From: Octopus bimaculoides
Lineage: Eukaryota
Reading direction: 5' to 3'
Length of the DNA stretch: 56,315 bases
NCBI RefSeq assembly: GCF_001194135.2
Contig: NC_068994.1
Location: 29,985,807 to 30,042,121, forward strand
Part shown: in pieces, positions 6,069 through 52,550 of the stretch
Numbering within the stretch: the stretch's first letter is position 1
Layout of the letters: each line of letters begins with the position of its first letter
Program-made: the position numbers and the translations under genes
Notes under the pieces: model-generated
Databases searched by the model: none
The model's input: only the letters and a program-made list of their open reading frames with translations
What the model was told of the DNA's origin: nothing

Positions 6069-6569
6069 TATATCAATAACCTTCTACCAATATTCTAAGC
6101 ATTTACAGATTTTTGTTTCTCAATCCCTTAATCAATAGAGGAACAGCAGTAACTGCTGACTCTGTTAAGCACCTCCATGTGCAGTGGGAGGAAGAAATTC
6201 TTCTCAGGCTTGATACCTGAATGACTGCAACAGAATGGATTGTACTAAAGTCTTGGTGGAGGCAGTGACAGTGATGGTAATGGTTGGTAGTATTAAACCA
6301 TGCAATGGTTTAAGTCTACCATTGTCCCACATATTTTCTATCATCCACTCTACTAAATAACATCCACAAAGCCTTGGCCAATGCAAGCCCTTAGCAGATG
6401 ATTATGATGATGATGACAACAACCTTCAATGTGGTGATCAACCAATCCCAACCCATCATGATTCACAGTACATCTATTTGACCAAATACAAAACATGACT
6501 CAGAAGACCCCTATTCCAGTGATTTTCCCAAGTCACTAGCTCATCATCGGATGCTAATCCACCATAAAG

Positions 6570-6697: not shown

Positions 6698-6956
6698 AGG
6701 AGTGTTATCAATGGAACAAAATGTTTATGTTAACCAATTAAGTAAACATAAGATTTTAATTCCTTTATTGACTTGCAATTTGAAGATCAGGTTGGGGTTT
6801 GTAATTAGAGAAAACACTGCATAGCTTAATCCTGTTTATTATGTAAACACAAATGATACACACACACACACGCATATATATATTTGTGTGTGTATGTATA
6901 CGTATCTATGTATATATACACACACAGCTATACACCTGCATACAGACATTTTTTAT

Positions 6957-11221: not shown

Positions 11222-13213
11222 CTAAGAACTGCTGTTTTGCCGAAGTTTCGAAGAAATGCTTTTCGAAGCAGCTTTTTGGCAACATTTAGGTTCCTTCTGC
11301 TTATTCTGTTTCAATTCTTGAGATGCAGATGTTGAACAGTTTTTAGAAAGTGGACCCCATCTAGGTGATGCCATGGGAAAGCCTCTTGACCAACCATAGT
11401 GACTACCCCAGCCTGGAGACATTGGCGGCAAATAGGTGGAACCCATCAGAGAAGGAATGGCTGCTGGCTGAAACTTCATAGCTGATGAAGACATCTGCAT
11501 CTGTCGATGTAGATCACTCGCAGCGCCAACATTGCTAGCATCCGGTCCATGCAGGAGCCATAAGCTGTCAAGCCCTGAATCAAGATGTGAACTTGGTGAT
11601 GTGATACTATTCTCATTGCAAGAAGATGTTGGCAAAGAACTTGTACCAGAAGATGCCTCTTTCTGAAGTTGTTGCTGTTGTTGTAGGCATGCATTCATCC
11701 ATTTTGAAAACATGCTTGTATTCTGCTGTTTGCTTGCCATAGACCGTGGGTCTTGCTGAAAAAATATTTCCTCATCCATTGAGCCCTGAACACACACATG
11801 GTTATTGAACTGTGACTTCTGTGAAAATTGTTTTTTGCAAATGCAGCAGAGCAACGGATTTTTATCAGAACTGTTTGATGGTACTGTAGGCATCTCCACA
11901 GCAACACTGTTATTGTTGTTGTTGTTGTTAGTGTTGTTGTTATTGTTGTTGGTGGTGGTAGTACTAGTTTTATCATGATGTTGAGAGCTTGCTTTTGAAG
12001 AACAGTAACCATTTTGGTTGTTTGTGGGAGATTGTTCACTTCTCGTGACTTCCTGAAGAGAATCTATATTTGATTTTTTATCCTCATTCTGACATTGCTG
12101 TTCTTTCAACAATTTCAAACCATGGGTTCGCTCATGATTCTTTAAAGTGCTTCTCTGTGAGAAAGCTTTCCCGCAAGTTAAACATACAAATGGTTTTTCG
12201 CCAGAGTGAATCCGTTCATGATTTCGTAAATTTGTCACTTGACTAAATGCTTTCCCACAGACCAAGCACACATAAGGCTTCTCCCCCGAATGTGTTCGTA
12301 AATGGTTTTTCAAATCTGTTCGCTGGGCAAATGCTTTAGGGCAAACTGTACATGCAAATGGTTTTTCTCTTGTGTGGACGCGTAAATGGTTTCTTAGATC
12401 TGTTCGTTGGCTAAATGCTTTTGGGCACATCATACAGTGAAAAGGCTTCTCTTTGGTGTGAACCCGCTCATGATTGCGTAAATTTGTCAACTGGCTAAAT
12501 GCCTTAAGGCAGTAGGAACATGTATATGGCTTGATGCCTGTGTGTACCCTTTCGTGACAAGTGAGTTCTGCCTGCTGGGCAAAGGACTTCAGACATACAG
12601 AGCAAGTATAAGGTTTTATTCCTGTGTGAATTCTCTCATGATTTCGAAGATTGGTCAGCTGGCTGAACGCTTTTGAACACGTTAAGCATTTGTAAGGCCT
12701 CTCACCAGAGTGTATCCGCTCATGATTACGTAAGTTCGTGCGCTGGCTGAAGGATTTGGAACACACCAAGCAAATGTATGGCCTTTCCCCACTGTGTATA
12801 CGTTCATGATTGCGCAGGTTTGTACGTTGACTAAATGCTTTTAAGCACACAAGACACACATAGGGTTTCTGACCAGTGTGAGTTCTTTCATGATTTTGGA
12901 GGTTCACTTTCTGTGCAAATACTTTTTCACACGTATTACATTTAAATAATTTAGGTGGAGTGTAAGGCATATTACTGCTTTGTCCACCCACAATCTGATT
13001 TGGTGCTTGGCTGGAATTTAGCTTGGTATTCATTTTCATAGCTGATGTTTTACAGTTTTGAGAAGTTGACAGGACTGATTCTGAGGAAACCATAGTTGGA
13101 CTTGAATGAATCAGTTTTGAAGTATCCTGTTTTAAGTTGGCTGGGGACAATGCAAATGTTCGATTGCAGAAATTTCTTTGGGTAGGCACCCCATATATCG
13201 GGAAAGGATACAT
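11222..13213 (-). CDS. C2H2 zinc-finger protein ZNF-A, 663 aa: 10 tandem fingers, one degenerate finger, poly-N and poly-Q tracts, conserved C-terminal Trp-rich motif
   Basis: Uninterrupted 2-kb ORF with CxxC-x12-HxxxH repeats and TGEKP-type linkers. Polypyrimidine tract plus AG acceptor (13224-13223) ends 9 nt before the ATG. Fingers differ mostly by synonymous changes. Confidence 0.96.
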   Translation of the reverse strand: MYPFPIYGVPTQRNFCNRTFALSPANLKQDTSKLIHSSPTMVSSESVLSTSQNCKTSAMKMNTKLNSSQAPNQIVGGQSSNMPYTPPKLFKCNTCEKVFAQKVNLQNHERTHTGQKPYVCLVCLKAFSQRTNLRNHERIHSGERPYICLVCSKSFSQRTNLRNHERIHSGERPYKCLTCSKAFSQLTNLRNHERIHTGIKPYTCSVCLKSFAQQAELTCHERVHTGIKPYTCSYCLKAFSQLTNLRNHERVHTKEKPFHCMMCPKAFSQRTDLRNHLRVHTREKPFACTVCPKAFAQRTDLKNHLRTHSGEKPYVCLVCGKAFSQVTNLRNHERIHSGEKPFVCLTCGKAFSQRSTLKNHERTHGLKLLKEQQCQNEDKKSNIDSLQEVTRSEQSPTNNQNGYCSSKASSQHHDKTSTTTTNNNNNNTNNNNNNNSVAVEMPTVPSNSSDKNPLLCCICKKQFSQKSQFNNHVCVQGSMDEEIFFQQDPRSMASKQQNTSMFSKWMNACLQQQQQLQKEASSGTSSLPTSSCNENSITSPSSHLDSGLDSLWLLHGPDASNVGAASDLHRQMQMSSSAMKFQPAAIPSLMGSTYLPPMSPGWGSHYGWSRGFPMASPRWGPLSKNCSTSASQELKQNKQKEPKCCQKAASKSISSKLRQNSSS

Positions 13214-15808: not shown

Positions 15809-18245
15809 GTACACTGAGCTGTTAGTCAAATCATCTACTGACAGGACAGTCAGTCATTTTTCTTTTGAGGAAGAAGAAGCTAAGGGAACAAAGAAACATT
15901 CAATCAGATTTGCTTGGTACTGGAGAATAAGGTCCAACAGTAGGTGACATCGATTGTGAATTGAATCAGTAAAACTGGTTGAGTGACATCCATAGTGTAA
16001 CTTGGATGACCGAATGAAGAATCTTCAGGATTCCTTTAAAAATAGGCCTAAGAGAGAAAAAGATAAGGATCAGTGTTAATCAAATGGTGGAGAACATATT
16101 TCAAATTATTGTGTTATAATCACAGTATTGTATTTGTGTTAAAGTGTGTGAAATTAAGTGTAGTTGTGTATTAATTTAATGTATATGTGTTCTTTAGTAT
16201 CTGAATAATCTAATGTACTCTTGTATGTATGTGTATACACATTAGTGAGTGAGTGCAGGTGTCTGCAGCTATAAAAGTCAAAAAGATAAACAACAGATTT
16301 ATCAGGTCACTAAGATTAACAAATCAAAAGTCAACAGTTCAAATATTCTCAATCCACTACACTTTGTACATGCTTCAAATTCTGGCCCATTAGCACACTG
16401 TCTCCTTTCTCCGCCTTTGCTACTGCTACTATAATAGCCTCTGCTCCTCAGATCTGGCTGGGCTCAACCCACTTCCACTCACATGAATTCAGTTCATCTT
16501 TCCTCCTTTCTTCACCCTCAAACTGCCCAAAACTACCCCCTGGCCCCACACTTAGTCACTATACTCAATCTTTCTTCACCATAATGTCAATCCCTCTGGA
16601 ATTTCCTTCTGTCTCTAGTCTTTCTCACAGACATTATTAACCTAAAAAGGATCAAGAGAAACATTAACAGCATCCACCTCACTGGTCTTGTAGGGCCTGC
16701 AAAATGGGATACAGCCCCTTTTTCCAAACTCAGTAGCTTAAGAAGTAAAAATAAACACACACACAACAGTCCATCTGGTTTTAGTCAATGGTAAAAGGAT
16801 AGCAGTGATGGTTTTTTTTTTTTACATAGACTCAAAGATGGGGAAGCAGAATGAAGGAGGAAAGTTTTTCTTAAACTAAAAATCTAGCTCAAATGCTTGC
16901 AACATCGTGAACACTGCTAAAGAAACCCAATAACCAGGCTGTGATTTTTAAACAGATTAAATCTACAATCCCAAAATCAAAGCAGTCACTTCAATGGACT
17001 TCCATAAAATTTCTATCAACCAAATTCCAATCACAAAGTGTTGGTCAATCTAAGACTAAGGTGGAAAACACTTAAATGTCTAAAAGTAGCTAGAATTCAG
17101 TACAAGTAATACATATTTTGGTAGCTTAAGAACTAAGTACAAATTCTTTGTGTAGGATGAAATCAACCAGGTCAATTTATCATGGATGCTACATGAATCC
17201 AAAGCTATTCATGTAGTGTCTACTTATGGTGAATTGAGTTCTTTAATGACAGATGCACCACATATCCTGTTAATCATATAGGATGCATATGCAGGGTTGC
17301 CAGATCAATTTTATGAAAAGTAGAACAAAATTTTTAAAAAGTGACAGACTGTAAATTAACCCAAAATGAAAATTTTGCTAATAAATAAAATACAGAATGA
17401 TTGCCTGTAAGTCAGTTTTAATTTACCTAGTTCATATTTTGATATGACATTCAATAGGATTCTTAACTGTAAACATTTAGCATTTAAATTGGCCATATCC
17501 AGCTTAAATATTCCATCTGTTTTATGTTCAAACTGACATCTGGCCTCTCACACCCATCTTACAATGTTGTTTAAAAATACACAATCATGTCATCAAAATC
17601 TTGAAGCTATATGATAATGCATGATATCATACATCCATCAGAACATACAGCTTCATTCTTCTCTAGTTTACACGGCCTTAGTATTCAGAGTACACAATGC
17701 TTGTGTACAAACATTGCTGTTTGGACACAAGTATCATACGGTATGTTTTTCACTTACCAACAGAGGTAATAGCTCTCCAAACTTTCTCCATCCTATCCTT
17801 ATTCTAGCACTATATTTTCAAAACATCCTCCTCCACTGATAATTATGCCACCTAAGTAACAGAAACTATGTATTGCTTCAAGTGAGCCTCCAGGGCATTC
17901 TCATGTATCTTTAGTGCTTATAGCTCTTATGTATCTTCCATATACAAATACCACTTTCTCCATTAATCTTCCTAAGACTCCGCTGCACCCCTTGTGTGAC
18001 CATAGCTGGCATTGGGTACACCATATGTAAATTCCTGTTTATGCCTTTTCTACATATCAAAAGGGCCATTTACCGGAAGGGAGTAATCCTATCTGTTTCC
18101 TTGCTTATAGAACTTTGGTCTCAGCTAAGTTAACTTTAAGGCCCTTTGATTCCATGTGTTGCTTCTATATGGAGTTTCTTTTCTAACTCAATTAAAGATT
18201 GTTGTATGAGAATAAAGTCATCAGCTTATAGTGGTTTCCAAAGGC

Positions 18246-21486: not shown

Positions 21487-22300
21487 ACATTTCCAGTCGG
21501 GTCCGAACTGCTGGTGGCTCAGAATAAGTCTTCGGTGGGTCTGGCCTGTGACAAAGGAGAGTTAGTGTTCACCTTCCAGGCTGGCCCCATCTTTTCACGG
21601 GACAGTCGCTCTGAATTACACAAGTCCTTCGTTCTTTCTCGTATTTTTTTAATCAACCCCTTTTTGTAAATGTTATTGTTGTCTTACAATGTCTTCCTTC
21701 TTTTGTCTTCCTCTTTTTAGTTCCCTTGGCGCTTGTTCACATTTTGTTTCTTTTTTTTTTACTTTTCATGTGTCTTTATGAGATCTGTCTTTCTTTTTCT
21801 ACTTTCTTTCCTTCCCTGCCGCACGCACTCCTTCCCTCTCTCTTTCATAATTACATTTTTCTTGTTCCTTTTCTCTCCCACTCCTCTGTATCTCACTATG
21901 TTTTGTCTTTCAGTTTCTCACTCTCACATTCTGTATCTCTATCTCTCTTTCTCTCACATGGTATGTTTTCATATGTGTGTATGTATTCTTTTCGCTCTTT
22001 CCGCCACTCTTATACACACTGAAACACATACAGATACACACATACACACACATCAGCGGTCACACGCCAAACGTAAACAAAACGAAGGGACGTAACTCTG
22101 AATGGATTGTTAGGTACTTTTTTTTCTCCTTTCTCAATTCTTTTATTGTGATGAGGAAGGAAGAAGTCTGTAGTAAAAAGAGGGAGGAGAAAAAGAAGTT
22201 GTAAAGAAGGAGGAGGAAAAGGAGGCTGTAGTACAAAGAGGGAGGAAGAGGAGAGAGACTTTATTTAAAACTGGAACGAAACCGACGCCATATTGGATGG
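21487..22300 (-). other. Candidate non-coding first exon (5'UTR) of ZNF-A
   Basis: Donor GT|GTAAGT at 21487/21486, a purine-rich leader and an AATATGGCG (YY1-type) motif at 22286-22294 on the same strand. Confidence 0.45.
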
Positions 22301-26336: not shown

Positions 26337-27526
26337 TTTCATAAATATTTGCCATAAAGGCAAAAGGGGGACGAACAAGGACAGACAAACATAAAAGGGG
26401 GTGAAGTAGCTGTATCGATTAAATATACCACAGCCACTCCTACGCCTATAAGGAAATTAAATTTTTGGAACAATTTTTCCTTTTTTTTTTTTTTTGAGAA
26501 CCGTATATTCCGTTGTATGAAACAAAAGAAAACAAGTAAAAAATTTCTATCCTTTTCCTACAAGGTGTGGGACGTTTTCTTTCTAAAATGGGTAGGATGT
26601 AATTTAAGGGATATTTCGCTGCTATTTCTAACAGGAGGATCAAGTGCATTCGAGGCTCCCACATTGGTATGTTTTTAAAAGTCACTGTGTGAATGTGTGA
26701 GGGTGGGGACTACTGAATTATAAGACGTAAACAAAGATTTGCGCAAGGAAACGATAACGCTTGTTAAGGTATTTACAAAGATGTTTGGGAGGAACCGAGC
26801 AGGAAGTCAGAGAGAGGGAGAAACGGGAAGCAGAAGGCCAGAGAGCAAGAGAAAGAGAGGGAAGAGACAGACAGACAGAGAAAGCGCTGACTGTTAACAG
26901 GTGAATCCATAGATACAATGTGAAACTCCAGAGTTACAAATACAATAAGACGAGAGTAATTGATACATGTTCTCCATTTCTTTTATTTAGCAGAAACGAA
27001 GCATGAGATGATTGATAGGTGTAAAGTTTTGATGTTGTAAACATTAACTAATCTTTAACATTGTTAAAATGGACTTAAATCCCCCCTCTCTCTCTCTCTC
27101 TCGTTTCCTGAACGGTCAGGCGTCGCAATATACTCTGAGTTGCGACGAAGTGAATCAACTACTTCTAAATGACTAATATATTATCGAGCACACGCACACA
27201 TGCATGCATACACATTTATTGGAGAGATTGCGCGTGCGTTATGTGGCTCAAGCAGGCTACAAAATATGTGAAATAAATGGTCCGTGTAAAATAACATCAA
27301 TACAGACCCCGTATTCCTGGCTAATGAATGCCTCATACATTTAGCCAGAACACGCAACGCATACACACACAGACACTTTTTTTAAAGCCTGGCAACAAAA
27401 TCACCAGTGAACTATCTGAATATTTCATGTAGTAAATTATTGCAATTAACTATAAACATATGCAAATATTTACTCGTACTTTTCTATTGTAAACGTTTGT
27501 GCGCGCGTGTATATATATATATATAT

Positions 27527-35489: not shown

Positions 35490-36817
35490 GACATGTGTTG
35501 CATGCAAGAGTTTAGATGGAGGAGAGTCTCTGCCAGACTACCCACAGTCAAGGAACAAAGAAATAAATTCTTCTGGATAGCCAATAGTGATGGTGTGGGA
35601 AGTGTGAGCATACATTTTGCAGAGAAATGGGTAAAGTGATCAAGGTAGTCAAAGTGTGCAACAATATAATTAAACTTAAGTTAGTCTTACAAAACATGGC
35701 AGCAACATATGCTTTTCAATCAGGATTGGCAGATGAACAAAAGGACCAATGTTGCCAACTCCTTTTGCAAATTACCTTGATGATGAATGACAATGTACTT
35801 ACCTTTGAGGTGAATGATTTCAACAGACTTGTTAGGTAACAACCCAATGGATTCCATAGTGTACATGGAGGTTGTGGCTTTGGGCCAAGAAATGAGGAAA
35901 GAACAAGGCTCTTGGAGTTCTATGAATGCAAATGATCTGATGGTCTGCAACACTAACTTCAAGAAACCAACCAGTCACCTGATTACCTATCTTAAAGATC
36001 AAGTGAACAGTCAGAAATTTATTGAAGTCCTATTTGAAGCATCTGATGAGAAAGAAAAGATAGATATAGATAATAGAGGAAAGCTAGATGTTCCTTCGGG
36101 ACAACTTAGTGAGAACAGGCCAAATCTGTGGCAAAGTTCTGGTGAAACCAAGATTGATGTGGTGGTGGAACAGAGAAATAGACAGAGCCATAAAGGTTAA
36201 GAGACAGGCTTGGAAAAAGAGAAGCAACAAAGAATTATATCGGGAAGCCAGAAAAGAAGCTAGGTAACAGGTTTACATAGCAAAAGGAGAAGCAAAAAGG
36301 AAGAGGTTTGTCAATGCTTTACACAGTGAAGATAAGATGTGTGAGGTGTTCTGGATTGCAAGACAATGTTTCAGAGAGAATCAAGATGCTGTGGGAAGGA
36401 AATGCGTACAAATGGATAATGGTACACTTGCACCAACTGATTCGGAAAAGAAAGAGACATAGAAATGCTGCTACTTTTAAATATGTAGAATGCATGAAAG
36501 TAAGAGGGTCTTCCAAACGTTCATCCAGCTAAGGGACCAGCTGTTGTAGCTGAAAGCAGTATCATATATAAAACAATTAAAGATATGAAGGTAGGGAAAG
36601 ACACTGATCAATCAGAAATCACCACTGAGATGCTAAAGACATCTGACAGAGTAGGATATGGCCTAGTCACCCGTTTAGTAAATCAGGTTGTACATGAAGG
36701 TGTCATACTAACACTGGTGCAGCTGCATAATAGTTAACTGCTACAAGTGTAAAGGGGATGAATTAAAGAAAAGTAACTACAGAGATATCAAATTGCTGAC
36801 CAGGTCATGAAAGTTAT
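35490..36817 (+). mobile_element. Decayed RTE-clade LINE (endonuclease, deletion, start of RT)
   Basis: FHSVHGGCGFGPRNEE..LLEF / ANDLMVCNTNFKKPTSHLITY / WWWNREIDRAIKVKRQAWK / IKDMKVGK..EITTEMLK / CYKCKGD...NYRDIKLL, with frameshifts. Confidence 0.88.
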
Positions 36818-37527: not shown

Positions 37528-37800
37528 GAAAAATTTGCTTCACACCTATGGATTTCTGGGTTCAATTCTTCTGCGTGATACATTGGGTAAGTTTCTTTTA
37601 CTGTAGTCTTAGGTTGATCAATGTCTTGTGAGTGAAACTGGCAGAAAAATTTGCTTCACACCCATGGGTTTCTGGGTTCAATTCTGCTGCATGGTACATT
37701 GGGTAAGTTTCTTTTACTGTAGTCTTAGGTTGATCAATGTTTTGTGAGTGAAATTGGCAGAATGATTCTATGAAGAAGCCCGCAAGATGTGTTTATGTGT
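37528..37800 (+). mobile_element. SINE family A head, tandemly duplicated (116-bp unit x2)
   Basis: Units start at 37528 and 37644 (gaaaaatttgcttcacacc...). Confidence 0.8.
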
Positions 37801-38962
37801 GTGTGTTCATTTACATGTTTACTGCTCTAGTATACCAGGCTATCAAAGGTTACTTTCAATGACCAGGCATCATTAAAATGGGACCCTGCCCTATGTTTGC
37901 AATAAGCTCTAATATTGATAAGGTTAATGAAAGACACCTGAAGATAGTGCCAGAGCATGGTCACAGCACACTGACTGAAATTAATAAAAGAAGAAACAAT
38001 TCTCGGTTTCAAAACATTTTTTAATGATAAACATTCAAATGTAAAGACAATGTTAAATAATTTTTCTCGGTGTAAATGCATGCATACATGCATAAATGGA
38101 ATTTCCTTCTAAGTAGAAGTTCACAAGAAACAAAAGTCATGGAAATTGTTAGGATGAATATTCTTTGGGTGGGAGATCAGAATAAATAACAGAATGCAAG
38201 TGAATATGTCATGTAAAGTGGGATGGGTGGGTTGGTGAGGTACACAGCTGCCTTCAGAGACAACAATAAAAAATCTTTGGTTTCATAATGGTTGAATCAT
38301 TCACCCAAAACAATGAGATTTTTGGTTCTTTTTTAAGACATGTAATAGTAGATATGTAGGGGGGTGGGGAATATTTATATTGATAGGAATCATTAACTAG
38401 AAAATAATTATATATACATACATACACACACACATATAGATATGTAACCACACATGCTTTTCTCGGACTATCCTTTTCCTTCTCTCCAGTCATTTTCCTC
38501 TTTCCTTTCTGACAAAGAACCGTGCTTGAAATGTCACAACCCAATCGTTTTTCCATCTTACTTTCTCTGGGCATCAATCTAATATATTCACTGTGTACAT
38601 ACTTTTGAATTGTGTTATTTTTCCTATTTTTGTTTTTTATTTGCCTACATACATATATATATATATCAGCCTAACCCATACTCCACTCTTGCCTCCCCCA
38701 AATCCCAACACCACCACTGACCACTTCCCAGCAACGACACACCTACACATGCACAGATCAAGGTCACCAGCCCTCTTCCACACTCACATACATACGCACG
38801 AGCACCTTCGTTTTGGGATCACCACTAATGTATTATCTCCCCTTCTTCCTAGCTTTCCTGTGTGACCCCTCTGTCCGGCATTCACCATGATAGATTGCTA
38901 GCCACTACACATTATTTTCTCTCCCTGTTTCTTTCTGTGTCTTTTGTTTTTTTGTGAATTCT

Positions 38963-41035: not shown

Positions 41036-41084
41036 CCATACATACATACATACATACATATATATACACACACCTATGGGTGTG

Positions 41085-41246
41085 TGTGTGTGGTGTTAGA
41101 AAGGGCATCCAGCTGTAGAAATTCTGCCAAATCAGATTGGAGCCTGGTGTAGCCATCTGGTTCGCCAGTCCTCAGTCAAATCGTCCAACCCATGCTAGCA
41201 TGGAAAGCGGACGTTAAACAATGATGATGATGATGATGATGATGAT
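41085..41246 (+). mobile_element. RTE-type 3' tail with (GAT)n terminus
   Basis: Nearly identical to 43577-43730. Confidence 0.8.
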
Positions 41247-43412: not shown

Positions 43413-43423
43413 NNNNNNNNNNA

Positions 43424-43730
43424 GTACCGCCTGACTGGCTCCCGTAGGACTTTCGAGCGAGATCGTTGCCAGTGCCCCTGGACTGGCTTGTGCGGGTGGC
43501 ACATAAAAGACACCATTTCGAGCGTGGCCGTTTTCGTGCGGGTGACACGTAAAAGCACCCACTACACTCTCTGAGTGGTTGGCGTTAGGAAGGGCATCCA
43601 GCTGTAGAAACTCTGCCAAATCAGACTGGAGCCTGGTGTTGCCATCCGGTTTCACCAGTCCTCAGTCAAATCGTCCAACCCATGCTAGCATGGAAAGCGG
43701 ACGTTAAACGATGATGATGATGATGATGAT
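43424..43730 (+). mobile_element. Young RTE-type tail element or SINE with (GAT)n terminus
   Basis: CpG-rich; internal duplicated gtgcgggtg(g/a)cac(a/g)taaaag; ends gttaaac(gat)7. Confidence 0.8.
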
Positions 43731-44041
43731 CACATACACACATATATCATGAAATATATGTATGTATTTGAATATGTCTTGTTTGATTTACATGTTTTTT
43801 GAGTCAAGTATGTGTTAAATGAATATATGATTGCAGTATTCTTTCACAACCAGATGCCTTTCTTGTCATTAACACTTAACTGTGTTTTAAATAAGGAATC
43901 TCTTAATTAAACATGTCTTGAAAGGCTAGAAGTAAGCAGACAATTTGTCAACCAGAGAAATGACAACAGCAATGTTTGTAGCTTGCAACTTTTATAGAGC
44001 ACAAACATAAACAAACAGATACACACACACATTTTATATAG

Positions 44042-48698: not shown

Positions 48699-49075
48699 TA
48701 GAATCTAACTTAGGATGTCTCATAGATAGTGGTGGCAATGGTGTTGGAGGTGGTAGGTGTGGTTATTATGGCAGTGATGGTGGTGGTGGTGTAGTGGTGA
48801 CAGTGGATGTGTATAATGGCTGCAATGATAGTGTTGGTGGTGGTGGTGGCAGTGGATGATGATGATGATGATGATGGTAGTAGTAGCATTGACTATGTTA
48901 GGATGTCTCATGGATGGTAGTGATGGAGACATTGGAGAGTGTAGTGGTAAAATTTGTGCTTTTGAAGATGATGCTGGTATTGGTCTTGGGATTGTGGTTG
49001 CAGAAGATGGTTGTGGTGGTGGCATTGGAGGTTGTAGAAATGGTTGTAGTCTTAGCATTGTGGTGGTGGCAAAGT
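48699..49075. repeat. (GGT/GAT)-rich low-complexity tract with an internal direct repeat
   Basis: ttaggatgtctcat(a/g)gat occurs twice, near 48712 and 48898. Confidence 0.75.
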
Positions 49076-49412
49076 CACAATAAATAATAAGAGCTTAGTT
49101 AACACAAGATTCTTAAATTTCAGAGATCATAAGATAGAGAGCAAGAAGTTAAAAGTTCCAATACTGGCCCAATTCCTACACCCCAGATTCTTCAACTATT
49201 TTAGAAGAAAGGTGTTAATGACAGGATAGGGATTCAACTTAAAAATAAGTTGTATAACAAAACATACATAAATAAATTACTGCTCCAATGATGTAATTTT
49301 AGTATGTGTGTATATGTTTGCATGTGCAATTATATAAATATATATANNNNNNNNNNNNNNNNNNNNNNNNNNNNNNNNNNNNNNNNNNNNNNNNNNNNNN
49401 NNNNNNNNNNNN

Positions 49413-50049: not shown

Positions 50050-50205
50050 ACTACATTATAATAAATTAGAATTATGGGAGGCGTTTCAATTTGAGTTTTT
50101 CCTTGCAAAAGATGAATGGTGCTGCTGCTGCTGTTGGTGGTGGTAGTGTTGGTTGTGGTGATGAGCAAGATTAGGTGATGATGATGATGAGATTGTTGCC
50201 ATGAC
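50050..50205 (-). pseudogene. Degenerate duplicate of the ZNF-B His/Gln-rich coding segment
   Basis: Aligns to 51000-51230; one frameshift and a TCA>TGA stop relative to ZNF-B. Confidence 0.85.
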
Positions 50206-50555
50206 AATGACAATACACAATGTATTGAGTGCTCATATTCATTTTTTTTTTGTAGAAACATTTACACTATCATCATTGTTTTATATCTGCTTTCCAGACT
50301 GGTTTGGATCAAATAGGTTGTTGCTGCTTTTGTAGATGAATTGAGAGATCACATCTCACTCCCAAGTTACATATTTTAATACATATTATGTCAAATTTTT
50401 GCAAATGTTGTAGATGTTTGAGAGTCTCCCTTGCTGTTAAAGTCAAAATGACCCGATTTGATCGTCTATTATTTTTTTTTTTAATGAACATTTTAAATAG
50501 CGTCACCTTGTATAAATTAATCTTTTCAAACTCACCATTAAATTCCTGAATTAAT

Positions 50556-52550
50556 TTAGATGACACCAGCTTGCTGGCTGTTTTGTGACCGATTGTTTTG
50601 CTGTTTGCTCTGCCTCACCCCGCATGACAGATTTGACGAGGAGTTTGCCCAGCTCGAGCTCCACCTTGGCGGGACTTGGAAGCCGCGAGACCAACCATAA
50701 TTGGATTCCCACGATTCCCAGGTCGAAGACATCCAGGACGAAGACAATGCAAGGGGCTGCAAACGAAGTGCAGCTGAGCGGGAGTGAGCATGAGATGATG
50801 GGCTTGGTGCTGGTGGCGGCGGTGTGGCTGGAACGGATGACATAGAGTTGTGTGAAGTTAATGATGCATTCATAGTTGGTGTGGAGGAGATGCTTGAGGA
50901 GAAAACTGGTACAGTTACTGTAGCAGCCCCAGCAGCAGCAGTGGCAACAGAAGAAGTAGAACTGGACACTACATTAGCTGCAGTTGACAATGTTGTACTT
51001 ACACTTGTTGAGGAATTAGAATTATGAGAGGTGTTTGAATTCGGGTTTTCCCTAGCGGAAGATGAATGGTGCTGCTGCTGCTGTTGTGGTTGCTGCTGCT
51101 GCTGCTGCTGTTGCTGCTGTTGTTGATGCTGTTGGTGATGGTGGTGGTGTTGGTTGTGGTGATGACCATGATTACGGTGATGGTGGTGGTGGTGGTGATG
51201 GTGATGCGACTGTTGCCGTGACATGCTTGTTGTAGATGTGTCCTTTGACAGCTGCTCAGGTGGCATTGCTCGACTGACTTCTTCACGAGTGTGAGAGCGC
51301 ATGTGTTTTTGCATGTTTACCCGTTGAGTAAACCCTTTACTGCACACAGCACAGCTGAATGGTTTGTCAGCTGTGTGTGTATACTCATGCTTTTTCAGGT
51401 TTGCTCTCTGGCTGAATCCACGCTGACATGTGCCACATTTGAATGGTTTCTCTCCAGAATGAACGAGAAGGTGAATGGTTAAGTTGGCTCGCTGAGTGAA
51501 ACCCTTTTTGCACACCTCACAGTAAAACAATTTACATTTTGTGTGTGTGCATGCATGATTGATTAAATGCACTCTCTGCGTGAATTCTTTACTACAGATA
51601 TCACATTGGAATCTTTTCAAACCCATGTGCATACATTCATGCTTTTTCAAGTTTGCACTCTGTGCAAAAGCTTTGTCACATATGGAACACTTGAATGGTT
51701 TTTCTCCACAGTGAATTCTTTCATGGTTCTGGAGATGAATCTTTTGACTAAACGTTTTGGAGCACACAAAGCAAGAATATGGCTTCTGACCACTATGGAC
51801 ACACTCATGATTAGTTAAATGCACACGCTGGCTGAATGCTTTCGAACAAATGCTGCACTGGTAAGGTTTCACTCCACTGTGAATGCGTTCATGGATGATA
51901 AGATGGGCTTGCTGGCTGAATGCTTTGCAACAAACAACACAGACATATGGTTTTATTCCACTGTGAATCCGTTCATGACAGATGAGGTGTGCCCTCTGGC
52001 TGAATGCCTTTCGACAAACGTAACAAGCATAAGGTTTTATGCCTGTATGAATACGTTCATGGTTTTGCAAATGTGCTCTTTGATTAAATGACTTTGAACA
52101 TATTGCACAAGAGAATGGACGTTCACCAGTGTGAACACGTTCATGGCTCAGCAGGTGAGCTCGTTGGCTGAATACTTTGCCACAGAAACCACAAGCCAAG
52201 TTTTTGAAACTCTCTGTGGCATGGTCCCGTTCATGGTTTCTTAAGTTTGCTCGTCGTGAGAAAGCTTTACGACAGATTTCACACTTAAAGGCTTTGGTAC
52301 TTTCTCCAAATCGATGCAGAAATGATTTTCGGTGGTGCGATATCCCATAATATGAACTCGAGGTACCAGATGTACTAGCTGTACCAGATGTACTAGGTGT
52401 GTCAGAAGTACTAACTGTGCCAGAAGTACTAGAGGTTGTGCCAGATGATGTAGTTTTCCAGTTGTCTTCCGGTAAAATTGTCCGACTATAATTGTCAGTT
52501 GAGGACATTTGTTTACCAACAGAATATGAAGATGTTGGTTCCTGGTACAT
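50556..52550 (-). CDS. C2H2 zinc-finger protein ZNF-B, 664 aa: N-terminal STSGT repeats, 12 fingers, poly-H/poly-Q, conserved C-terminal Trp-rich motif
   Basis: Uninterrupted ORF with 12 CxxC-x12-HxxxH units; paralogous C-terminus with ZNF-A; candidate acceptor at 52675-52674. Confidence 0.96.
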   Translation of the reverse strand: MYQEPTSSYSVGKQMSSTDNYSRTILPEDNWKTTSSGTTSSTSGTVSTSDTPSTSGTASTSGTSSSYYGISHHRKSFLHRFGESTKAFKCEICRKAFSRRANLRNHERDHATESFKNLACGFCGKVFSQRAHLLSHERVHTGERPFSCAICSKSFNQRAHLQNHERIHTGIKPYACYVCRKAFSQRAHLICHERIHSGIKPYVCVVCCKAFSQQAHLIIHERIHSGVKPYQCSICSKAFSQRVHLTNHECVHSGQKPYSCFVCSKTFSQKIHLQNHERIHCGEKPFKCSICDKAFAQSANLKKHECMHMGLKRFQCDICSKEFTQRVHLINHACTHTKCKLFYCEVCKKGFTQRANLTIHLLVHSGEKPFKCGTCQRGFSQRANLKKHEYTHTADKPFSCAVCSKGFTQRVNMQKHMRSHTREEVSRAMPPEQLSKDTSTTSMSRQQSHHHHHHHHHHRNHGHHHNQHHHHHQQHQQQQQQQQQQQQPQQQQQHHSSSARENPNSNTSHNSNSSTSVSTTLSTAANVVSSSTSSVATAAAGAATVTVPVFSSSISSTPTMNASLTSHNSMSSVPATPPPPAPSPSSHAHSRSAALRLQPLALSSSWMSSTWESWESNYGWSRGFQVPPRWSSSWANSSSNLSCGVRQSKQQNNRSQNSQQAGVI

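Follow-up and report, generated by a model that had tools for sequence, protein, structure and literature searches.

ZNF-B, an Octopus Poly-Zinc-Finger Protein With Six Successive Q/H Helices and a Predicted Preference for Purine-Rich N-G-A DNA

The ZNF-B Gene and Its Product

The window analyzed here, a 56,315-nucleotide stretch of the Octopus bimaculoides genome, carries a C2H2 zinc-finger gene, named ZNF-B, whose open reading frame (ORF) corresponds exactly to a gene called in the assembly gene index on chromosome CM046614.1 (GCA_001194135.2). Its features are the following:

50556..52550, minus strand: ZNF-B coding sequence, a single unbroken ORF of 664 codons plus stop (ORF list, Pfam)
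51291..52283, minus strand: array of 12 C2H2 fingers, C-x2-C-x12-H-x3-H units (regular-expression parse)
51708..52193, minus strand: fingers 2-7, predicted (N-G-A)6 reading block (helix parse and linkers)
50661..50711, minus strand: C-terminal motif WESNYGWSRGFQVPPRW, residues 614-630, common to ZNF-A and its orthologues

The protein is composed of an S/T-rich N-terminus, the 12 fingers, a tail rich in His, Gln, and Ser (55 Ser, 31 Gln, and 26 His in 244 residues) and a C-terminal Trp-rich motif. The array retains its 48 zinc ligands in full, along with the hydrophobic core residues of 12 out of 12 fingers, and position +4 of the helices is a leucine in every finger except F12, where it is a methionine. 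The 1,992-nt ORF is unbroken despite AT-rich surroundings. In Pfam, zf-C2H2 (PF00096) is matched with 154.7 bits (cut-off 25.2) and zf-H2C2_2 (PF13465) with 169.1 bits (cut-off 40), and a PDB sequence search returned generic zinc-finger matches only (ZNF568, Aart, PRDM9, CTCF). ZNF-B is thus an intact C2H2 (Krueppel-type) poly-zinc-finger gene. The Pfam matches are limited to zinc-finger families, with no KRAB, SCAN, BTB, ZAD, FiNZ, or other effector domain, so that the term "KRAB-independent," used in an earlier note on this DNA, is true but trivially so.

TGEKP-type linkers are canonical within F2-F8 and F10-F12. Those between F1 and F2, F8 and F9, and F9 and F10 are non-canonical and split the array into F1, F2-8, F9, and F10-12. 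Just downstream of the gene, its poly-His/Gln segment recurs as a partial, degenerate duplicate.

ZNF-A, a Conserved Paralogue of ZNF-B

A second zinc-finger gene, ZNF-A, is found 37 kb away on the same strand:

11222..13213, minus strand: ZNF-A coding sequence, 663 codons, conserved paralogue of ZNF-B
11357..11410, minus strand: ZNF-A C-terminal motif WGSHYGWSRGFPMASPRW, residues 602-619 (motif comparison)

In ZNF-A, 10 fingers stand in tandem, most of them with a Q-x-T-N-L-R-N helix, and a further, degenerate finger stands apart from them. Its orthologues in O. vulgaris and O. sinensis, annotated as "zinc finger protein 2 homolog" (XP_029644556.1; CAI9732748.1), are 99% identical to it. In an orthologue from a distant cephalopod (Logan cluster P0110/P0123), all 10 helices are identical, with a pN of 0.073 and saturated synonymous sites. 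Identity of the contact helices across such a divergence characterizes a conserved transcription factor rather than a zinc-finger protein chasing transposable elements (TEs).

The two proteins both begin with MY, align colinearly finger by finger and have near-equal lengths (664 and 663 amino acids), a rare QQA helix start in finger 5, a low-complexity tail and Q at position -1 in nearly all fingers. However, their overall identity is 38%, and ZNF-B differs from ZNF-A by one extra finger, by a last finger contiguous with the array and by the poly-His/poly-Gln nature of its tail. Moreover, fingers 2-8, 10, and 11 of the two proteins do not carry the same residue at +3. In fingers 2-7, ZNF-B has H at all six +3 positions whereas ZNF-A has N, N, N, E, N, and D. 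The differing contact helices and the low identity argue that ZNF-B is a paralogue, not an orthologue, of ZNF-A; by these comparisons it is an old, diverged, colinear tandem paralogue of this deeply conserved cephalopod protein. Across fingers 2-8, pN between the two genes is 0.275 and synonymous sites are saturated. Since a neutral copy of such age would lose a 2-kb ORF, ZNF-B has been under long-term constraint.

The similarity extends to the C-termini. As the earlier note had stated, ZNF-A and ZNF-B share a motif there, W.[SN].YGW[SP]RGF..PRW, which in ZNF-B lies in a stretch with six tryptophans in the last 70 residues. Among 299 proteins compared, the full motif is found only in ZNF-A, its orthologues and ZNF-B. 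The motif probably docks a cofactor.

Orthologues of ZNF-B were sought in several ways. Full-length searches (word-indexed, and exhaustive against representatives) gave no colinear match of ~660 amino acids, generic long arrays swamping the listing. A profile of the C-terminal motif alone had no match at E ≤ 10, and a query made of the N-terminus and F1-F3 returned only unrelated short zinc-finger proteins. The exact 664-residue protein and its Met15-start form are absent from a collection of 15 billion sequences. No orthologue was found among the annotated proteins of O. sinensis or O. vulgaris; at the level of the loci, the comparison with these species, made via the ZNF-A orthologue, covers window positions 8.3-18.7 kb.

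A Run of Six Q/H Helices

The helices of ZNF-B (positions -1 to +6) are RRANLRN, QRAHLLS, QRAHLQN, QRAHLIC, QQAHLII, and QRVHLTN in fingers 1-6 and QKIHLQN, QSANLKK, QRVHLIN, QRANLTI, QRANLKK, and QRVNMQK in fingers 7-12. This regular-expression parse reproduces, letter for letter, the helix list of the earlier note and bears out its observation that fingers 2-7 are six successive fingers with Q at -1 and H at +3. Finger 9 is a seventh finger of this type. The linkers joining fingers 2-7 are TGERP, TGIKP, SGIKP, SGVKP, and SGQKP.

A background set was drawn from a similarity search with ZNF-B (136 poly-zinc-finger proteins, 2042 fingers). In it, Q(-1)/H(+3) helices account for 7.0% of the fingers and their longest run is three. 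With this background, the six-finger run of ZNF-B is more than chance. The 84-nt units encoding the fingers show a mutual DNA identity of 55-68%, with the sole exception of F4/F5 (75%), and Tandem Repeats Finder (TRF) detects an 84-bp period at 51862-52061 with just a 77% match between copies. These values led to rejection of the idea that the run arose by a recent tandem duplication within the gene. Maintenance of Q(-1)/H(+3) in six fingers in spite of this divergence fits with selection on the contact positions. The repetition of Q/H helices in ZNF-B is real and unusual.

Predicted DNA Specificity

In the canonical recognition code, base contacts are made by helix positions -1, +3, and +6, Q at -1 reading A and H at +3 reading G. 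Applied to fingers 2-7, this code predicts six tandem N-G-A triplets. The ZNF-B helices are close to published Barbas modules, namely QRAHLER for GGA and QRANLRA for AAA (PMC9705829), QAGHLAS for TGA (PMC3607563), and QLAHLRA for AGA; the first three assignments, on which the earlier note had relied, are confirmed by these sources. In other modules, RSDHLTN for AGG and RKDNLKN for AAG, N at +6 pairs with a 5′-A (PMC3607563). Fingers 3, 6, and 7 of ZNF-B have N at +6, and published modules would thus favor a 5′-A there; only finger 2, with S at +6, resembles the TGA module. Hence, the (NGA)n reading proposed earlier stands as far as the six NGA triplets are concerned, but not for T as their 5′ base. 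Besides, the Q/H fingers do not agree with one another at +2 and +6, which could modulate specificity.

A position weight matrix (PWM), derived from a crude hand-made table, was used to score the window, a check suggested in the earlier note. With fingers 2-7, (GAT)n tracts are the best local matches, although (TGA)6 has the worst score of the four NGA repeats. With all 12 fingers, in contrast, the consensus is a GA-rich purine sequence, GAAGAAnAAAGAGAAAGAAGAnGAnGAAGAnGAAAG, and the retroposon tails described below come only 8th and 10th in the window. It should also be noted that four of the 10 trinucleotide-repeat classes fit NGA, so that agreement with the local tail class is not significant and constitutes weak evidence. 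The caution of the earlier note that the code is only approximate for long arrays is well founded. For human KRAB zinc-finger proteins (KZNFs), code-predicted motifs of long arrays matched experiment (ChIP-exo) in only 5% of the cases, and code-based predictions often give simple-repeat motifs (PMC10547256).

Retroposon Tails in the Window

Two copies of a SINE-like element lie between the two genes:

41083..41246, plus strand: SINE-like non-autonomous retroposon, 5′-truncated copy of 164 bp, with an (ATG)8-8.7 tail at 41221-41246
43423..43731, plus strand: SINE-like element, longer copy of 309 bp, with a (GAT)7 tail at 43710-43730

The copies are 92% identical, and the 5′ end of the longer one is lost in an assembly gap. 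Their (ATG)8 and (GAT)7 ends agree with the (GAT)n-type tails that the earlier note had placed at 41246 and 43730. RTE elements, octopus RTE-2_OV among them, typically end in a 3′ microsatellite (PMC9115989), and both copies have such a short tandem repeat end. The label "RTE-type" given to them is putative: both are short, non-autonomous copies, and 10 candidate ORFs scanned in the window gave no Pfam match to a reverse transcriptase or endonuclease domain. Neither Rfam nor ARAGORN (tRNA) gave a match for the element, and no consensus for it was found in the literature searched. An O. sinensis-specific insertion of the family (L008:6846-7008) indicates that it has been recently active.

The window contains 15 (GAN)6 matches for 0.08 expected, every one of them a (GAT)n tract. 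Similarly, in ~100 kb of Octopus sequence, the sole NGA-type trinucleotide arrays of at least five units belong to the ATC/GAT class, and three out of five are tails of the SINE-like element. The link proposed between ZNF-B and (GAT)n retroposon tails is a prediction of the approximate recognition code.

Possible Functions of ZNF-B

We tentatively favor, with a confidence that stays below one half, the view that ZNF-B is a functional, long-kept poly-zinc-finger DNA-binding protein, paralogous to ZNF-A, which would read purine-rich N-G-A DNA. The Q residues at -1 of both proteins are predicted to specify A at every third base, and the coordinated change at +3 in fingers 2-7 would switch the middle base from A or C in ZNF-A to G in ZNF-B. 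ZNF-A may read A-tracts. Fingers 2-8 of ZNF-B would wrap ~18-21 bp of periodic purine-rich N-G-A DNA, the most literal target being an A/N-G-A, GA-rich, GAA/AGA-like sequence, and the protein could act at purine-rich sites of low complexity, either in transcription or on chromatin. ZNF-B may also contact the (GAT)n tails of the SINE, since these are the most frequent NGA arrays of this genome, but they need not be targets for which it was selected.

In many natural zinc-finger arrays, only some of the fingers are put to use. ZNF-B might likewise bind a specific, non-repetitive motif via a few fingers, or have some fingers contacting protein or RNA, the Q/H pattern then reflecting ancestry or a framework preference. 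The splitting of the array by non-canonical linkers and the different +2 and +6 residues of the Q/H fingers point in this direction, as does the low success of code-predicted motifs, which are often spuriously simple-repeat-like (PMC10547256). Nevertheless, Q(-1)/H(+3) were kept by six fingers despite the wide divergence of their DNA, and the same periodic logic, with Q and N, is frozen in ZNF-A across deep time. We therefore regard such a mode of binding as possible but rather unlikely. That ZNF-B would be an unexpressed or decaying copy devoid of current function is very improbable. Its protein is missing from NCBI/UniRef-derived collections where ZNF-A is present, annotated O. sinensis and O. 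vulgaris proteins include no orthologue, and the degenerate duplicate of its poly-His/Gln segment suggests local instability. But the ORF is uninterrupted in AT-rich DNA, zinc ligands and hydrophobic cores are preserved throughout the array, pN relative to ZNF-A is far under the saturated pS, the C-terminal motif is kept and the assembly gene index calls a gene at the exact ORF.

A narrower proposal, in line with the earlier note, is that ZNF-B has the (TGA/GAT)n tails of the abundant octopus SINE/RTE-type retroposons as its specific target and, jointly with ZNF-A, keeps these elements under KRAB-free control. Several observations go along with it: the six Q/H fingers predict (NGA)6, the tails, at 21-26 bp, offer room for 6-7 fingers and rank first locally with the fingers 2-7 PWM, the window has no (GAN)6 match other than (GAT)n, the GAT class provides the only NGA-type arrays in the ~100 kb of Octopus DNA, mostly as SINE tails, and the SINE family was recently active. 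Microsatellite 3′ ends are, moreover, an RTE trait (PMC9115989), and a genome-wide statistical enrichment of octopus zinc-finger motifs in TEs has been described (PMC10547256). However, F3, F6, and F7 have N at +6, which favors 5′-A, and F2 alone resembles the TGA module; (TGA)6 is the worst-scoring NGA repeat, and the 12-finger PWM demotes the tails. Four repeat classes out of 10 would have counted as a match, and closeness within the window is meaningless for a genome-wide SINE. In addition, the contact residues of ZNF-A are frozen across distant cephalopods while cephalopod repeats are largely lineage-specific (PMC12513265), and no repressor domain is detected in ZNF-B by Pfam. On balance, we consider this proposal improbable. 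Even less credit is given to its extended form, in which ZNF-A and ZNF-B would constitute a cephalopod subfamily reading simple-sequence DNA and equipped with a Trp-rich docking motif, a coordinated replacement of N by H at +3 of six fingers having shifted ZNF-B away from A-tracts and toward the (GAT)n tails of recently active octopus SINE/RTE elements, so as to mark or restrain retroposon 3′ ends without KRAB.

Comparison With Known Systems and Significance

The favored view, a purine-rich N-G-A specificity of ZNF-B, can be compared with characterized zinc-finger arrays. Six-finger Aart (PDB 2I13), among the best PDB sequence matches of ZNF-B, shows that 18 contiguous bp are readable by six canonically linked fingers. 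Unlike Aart and the engineered modules, ZNF-B is natural, has 12 fingers and other residues at +5/+6 (N, S, C, I), and its specificity is only predicted. Among natural C2H2 arrays, ZNF384/CIZ, which recognizes A-tracts, binds (G/C)AAAAA(A) (PMC11252495) and Zscan4 binds (CA)n microsatellites (PMC7083622). Comparable homopolymer or microsatellite sites, A-rich for ZNF-A and made of GA triplets for ZNF-B, are predicted here, with the difference that such binding was established experimentally for ZNF384 and Zscan4 and derives from the code for the octopus proteins; the likeness is that of generic fingers, and Zscan4 has a SCAN domain, for which ZNF-B has no match. Vertebrate KRAB-ZFPs and TE-targeting zinc-finger expansions resemble ZNF-B by their long tandem C2H2 arrays (Wells et al., 2023, PMC10547256). 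Unlike KRAB-ZFPs, ZNF-B has neither KRAB nor another recognized effector domain, and unlike the lineage-specific ones, it is partnered by the deeply conserved ZNF-A.

Octopus genomes contain a very large C2H2 expansion. For octopus zinc-finger motifs taken together, enrichment in TEs has been predicted (PMC10547256), and whether the expanded genes follow the SINE/LINE expansions has been posed as an open question (PMC12513265). In this context, what is available for ZNF-B is a specificity predicted with an approximate code, which does not amount to evidence for a TE-control system. The ZNF-A/ZNF-B pair, one member of which is frozen across cephalopods while the other differs cleanly and periodically at one contact position, offers a compact test of zinc-finger retargeting after duplication. 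It could also serve to test host recognition of simple-sequence retroposon tails.

Organization of the ZNF-B Locus

The window maps to O. bimaculoides chromosome CM046614.1 (GCA_001194135.2), at ~30.0 Mb. It is AT-rich (GC 30-43%), contains many microsatellites and assembly gaps, and in 56 kb holds only two long clean ORFs, the gene under study, ZNF-B, and its paralogue ZNF-A, on the same strand and 37 kb apart.

Zinc-finger features of the window
11222-13213, minus strand: ZNF-A, ORF of 663 aa
50556-52550, minus strand: ZNF-B, ORF of 664 aa
51291-52283, minus strand: ZNF-B finger array, 12 C-x2-C-x12-H-x3-H fingers by parsing

The ZNF-B ORF coincides exactly with a gene called in the assembly. 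It belongs to the C2H2 poly-zinc-finger class, of which it shows every defining feature; its Pfam matches are zinc-finger families alone, far above the cut-offs. Since the same Pfam search found no KRAB, SCAN, BTB or other effector domain, ZNF-B is not a KRAB-ZFP. Downstream of its stop codon (~350-500 bp), a degenerate partial duplicate of its poly-His/poly-Gln segment (residues ~442-512; DNA 51014-51191) lies at 50065-50210 (minus strand), with 82-87% identity, an internal stop codon and a (TGA)5 run at 50176-50190. A low-complexity, His/Ile/Thr-rich ORF at 48723-49094 (minus strand) contains (GAT)7 at 48855-48875; weakly similar to the poly-His region, with an LRLQP string recalling AALRLQPLA of ZNF-B, it may be a further decayed remnant of a tail like that of ZNF-B, or mere low complexity. 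Assembly gaps (N runs) at ~25.9, 27.8, 30.0, 43.41 and 49.35 kb usually adjoin TA/TG microsatellites.

A Run of Six Q/H Recognition Helices

Parsing of ZNF-B reproduced exactly the 12 helices listed in an earlier note made from the sequence alone, including its six consecutive fingers with Q at -1 and H at +3 (fingers 2-7); finger 9 carries the same pair. Among 2042 fingers from 136 poly-ZF proteins, themselves retrieved by similarity to ZNF-B, this combination accounts for 7.0%, and no protein has more than three such fingers in a row. The run of six exceeds chance. TRF detects an 84-bp period in the array. At the DNA level, however, the finger units share only 55-68% identity (F4/F5, 75%), which rules out a young internal duplication as the source of the run, and identical residues often use different codons. 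Thus, the contact pattern was kept while the DNA diverged, and the helix periodicity is real and notable.

An Old Paralogue of a Strongly Constrained Gene

ZNF-A and ZNF-B are colinear finger by finger and share an MY start, a finger 5 helix that unusually opens with QQA, and Q at -1 in nearly all fingers. The C-terminal motif said to be common to both was found as W.[SN].YGW[SP]RGF..PRW, ~35-45 residues before the C-terminus. In O. vulgaris and O. sinensis, ZNF-A carries the annotation "zinc finger protein 2 homolog" (99% identity). In a much more distant cephalopod (Logan assemblies, P0110/P0123), its orthologue is 60% identical overall, yet 10 of 10 helices and the C-terminal motif are unchanged, as are an isolated degenerate finger (CCICKKQFSQKSQFNNHVC, ~residue 455) and the N-terminal MYPFP motif. 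The fingers have diverged by 0.073 at non-synonymous sites and to saturation at synonymous ones, and the flanks no longer align. ZNF-A is thus a transcription factor under strong constraint. Its helices, mostly Q-x-T-N-L-R-N, make it a predicted A-tract/ACA reader, and its PWM-predicted site is A-tract-like.

Between the paralogues, fingers 2-8 show pN 0.275 and saturated synonymous sites; therefore the duplication is old. Because ZNF-B has nevertheless retained a 1,992-nt ORF, 48 of 48 zinc ligands and the C-terminal motif, it has probably been under long-term purifying selection. The clearest difference lies at +3 of fingers 2-7, N, N, N, E, N, D in ZNF-A and H in all six in ZNF-B. ZNF-B is related to the cephalopod "zinc finger protein 2 homolog" gene by paralogy rather than orthology. 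In the protein collection, the exact protein had no match, and no orthologue emerged from full-length searches, dominated by generic long arrays, or from N-terminal or C-terminal-motif-only queries.

Predicted DNA Recognition

In the canonical code, Q at -1 specifies A, H at +3 specifies G, and +6 sets the 5' base. Fingers 2-7 would then read six N-G-A triplets. Linkers are non-canonical at F1-F2, F8-F9 and F9-F10 and TGEKP-type across fingers 2-8 and 10-12, so that 6-7 fingers could plausibly read DNA as one uninterrupted block, as in Aart and ZNF568, the best PDB sequence matches. The modules quoted in the earlier note agree with published tables, which give TGA = QAGHLAS, AGA = QLAHLRA, AGG = RSDHLTN and AAG = RKDNLKN (PMC3607563), and GGA = QRAHLER and AAA = QRANLRA (PMC9705829). 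In these modules, N at +6 pairs with 5'-A (RSDHLTN, RKDNLKN) and S with T (QAGHLAS; PMC3607563). The +6 residues of fingers 2-7 being S, N, C, I, N and N, only finger 2 fits TGA, since fingers 3, 6 and 7 carry N. With a crude PWM, hand-made from code rules and published modules, fingers 7 to 2 yield the predicted site AGAAGAnGAnGAAGAnGA and the entire array GAAGAAnAAAGAGAAAGAAGAnGAnGAAGAnGAAAG; the six-finger model scores (TGA)6 at 15.1, against 19.2-19.5 for (AGA)6, (GGA)6 and (CGA)6. NGA stands as a reasonable prediction. Of code-predicted KZNF motifs, often simple repeats, only 5% match ChIP-exo motifs (Wells et al., PMC10547256).

Retroposon Tails as Candidate Targets

The (GAT)n tails proposed as targets, placed at 41246 and 43730, are present, as (ATG)8 at 41221-41244/6 and (GAT)7 at 43710-43730. 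They end two short, non-autonomous copies.

SINE-like copies, 92% identical to each other
41083-41246, plus strand: 5'-truncated
43423-43731, plus strand: abuts an assembly gap, whose N run removes the 5' end

Neither Rfam nor ARAGORN detected a tRNA-like head on these copies. Microsatellite 3' ends are typical of RTE elements, octopus RTE-2_OV among them (PMC9115989), but Pfam detected neither RT nor endonuclease in ten candidate ORFs of the window, so that the label "RTE-type" is only plausible. In O. sinensis, a reversed (GAT)n-tailed copy (CM016872.1, L008:6846-7008; (CAT)6 at 6855-6872) corresponds to window ~16190-16203, where O. bimaculoides and O. vulgaris have none. This insertion, confined to one of three octopuses, argues for recent activity of the family. 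An interrupted GAT tract at 6397-6416 (plus strand; GATGATTATGATGATGATGA) may be another decayed retroposon tail. A 116-bp unit at 37528-37762 (two copies, 94% identity) carries a GGGTTCAATTC string that resembles a tRNA B box, and may therefore represent the head of another, tRNA-derived SINE. ORF fragments at 1-345 and 35814-36197 (plus strand) share FKKP[AT]SHL[FI]TY, continued by QSG in the former; on visual inspection they look like remnants of a LINE endonuclease, with no Pfam match.

That ZNF-B functions to recognize such tails appears improbable. The window contains 15 matches to (GAN)6 against 0.08 expected, every one a (GAT)n tract, and in ~100 kb of Octopus sequence, made up of the window and its syntenic loci in O. 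sinensis and O. vulgaris (which reach window coordinate 18.7 kb), NGA-type arrays of at least five units are GAT-class only, three of five being tails of this SINE. However, NGA is satisfied by 4 of 10 trinucleotide-repeat classes, so the match has little statistical weight, and nearness to copies of a genome-wide SINE has none. In the PWM check called for earlier, the six-finger model ranks (GAT)n tracts first in the window, but the twelve-finger model places the tails 8th and 10th, behind GA-rich purine tracts.

Top twelve-finger PWM sites, all GA-rich purine
21700-21735
22203-22238
38468-38503
26833-26868

A TE arms race for the ZNF-A/ZNF-B pair is likewise disfavoured, because the ZNF-A helices are frozen while cephalopod repeat content is largely lineage-specific (PMC12513265); recognition of a universal simple sequence is still compatible. 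In its predicted mode of reading, ZNF-B most resembles arrays for periodic or simple sequence, whether engineered (Aart and the Barbas modules) or natural, namely ZNF384 (A-tracts; PMC11252495) and Zscan4 ((CA)n; PMC7083622). Most worth experiment are the coordinated +3 switch between the ultra-conserved ZNF-A and its old paralogue ZNF-B, and the Trp-rich C-terminal motif common to both.
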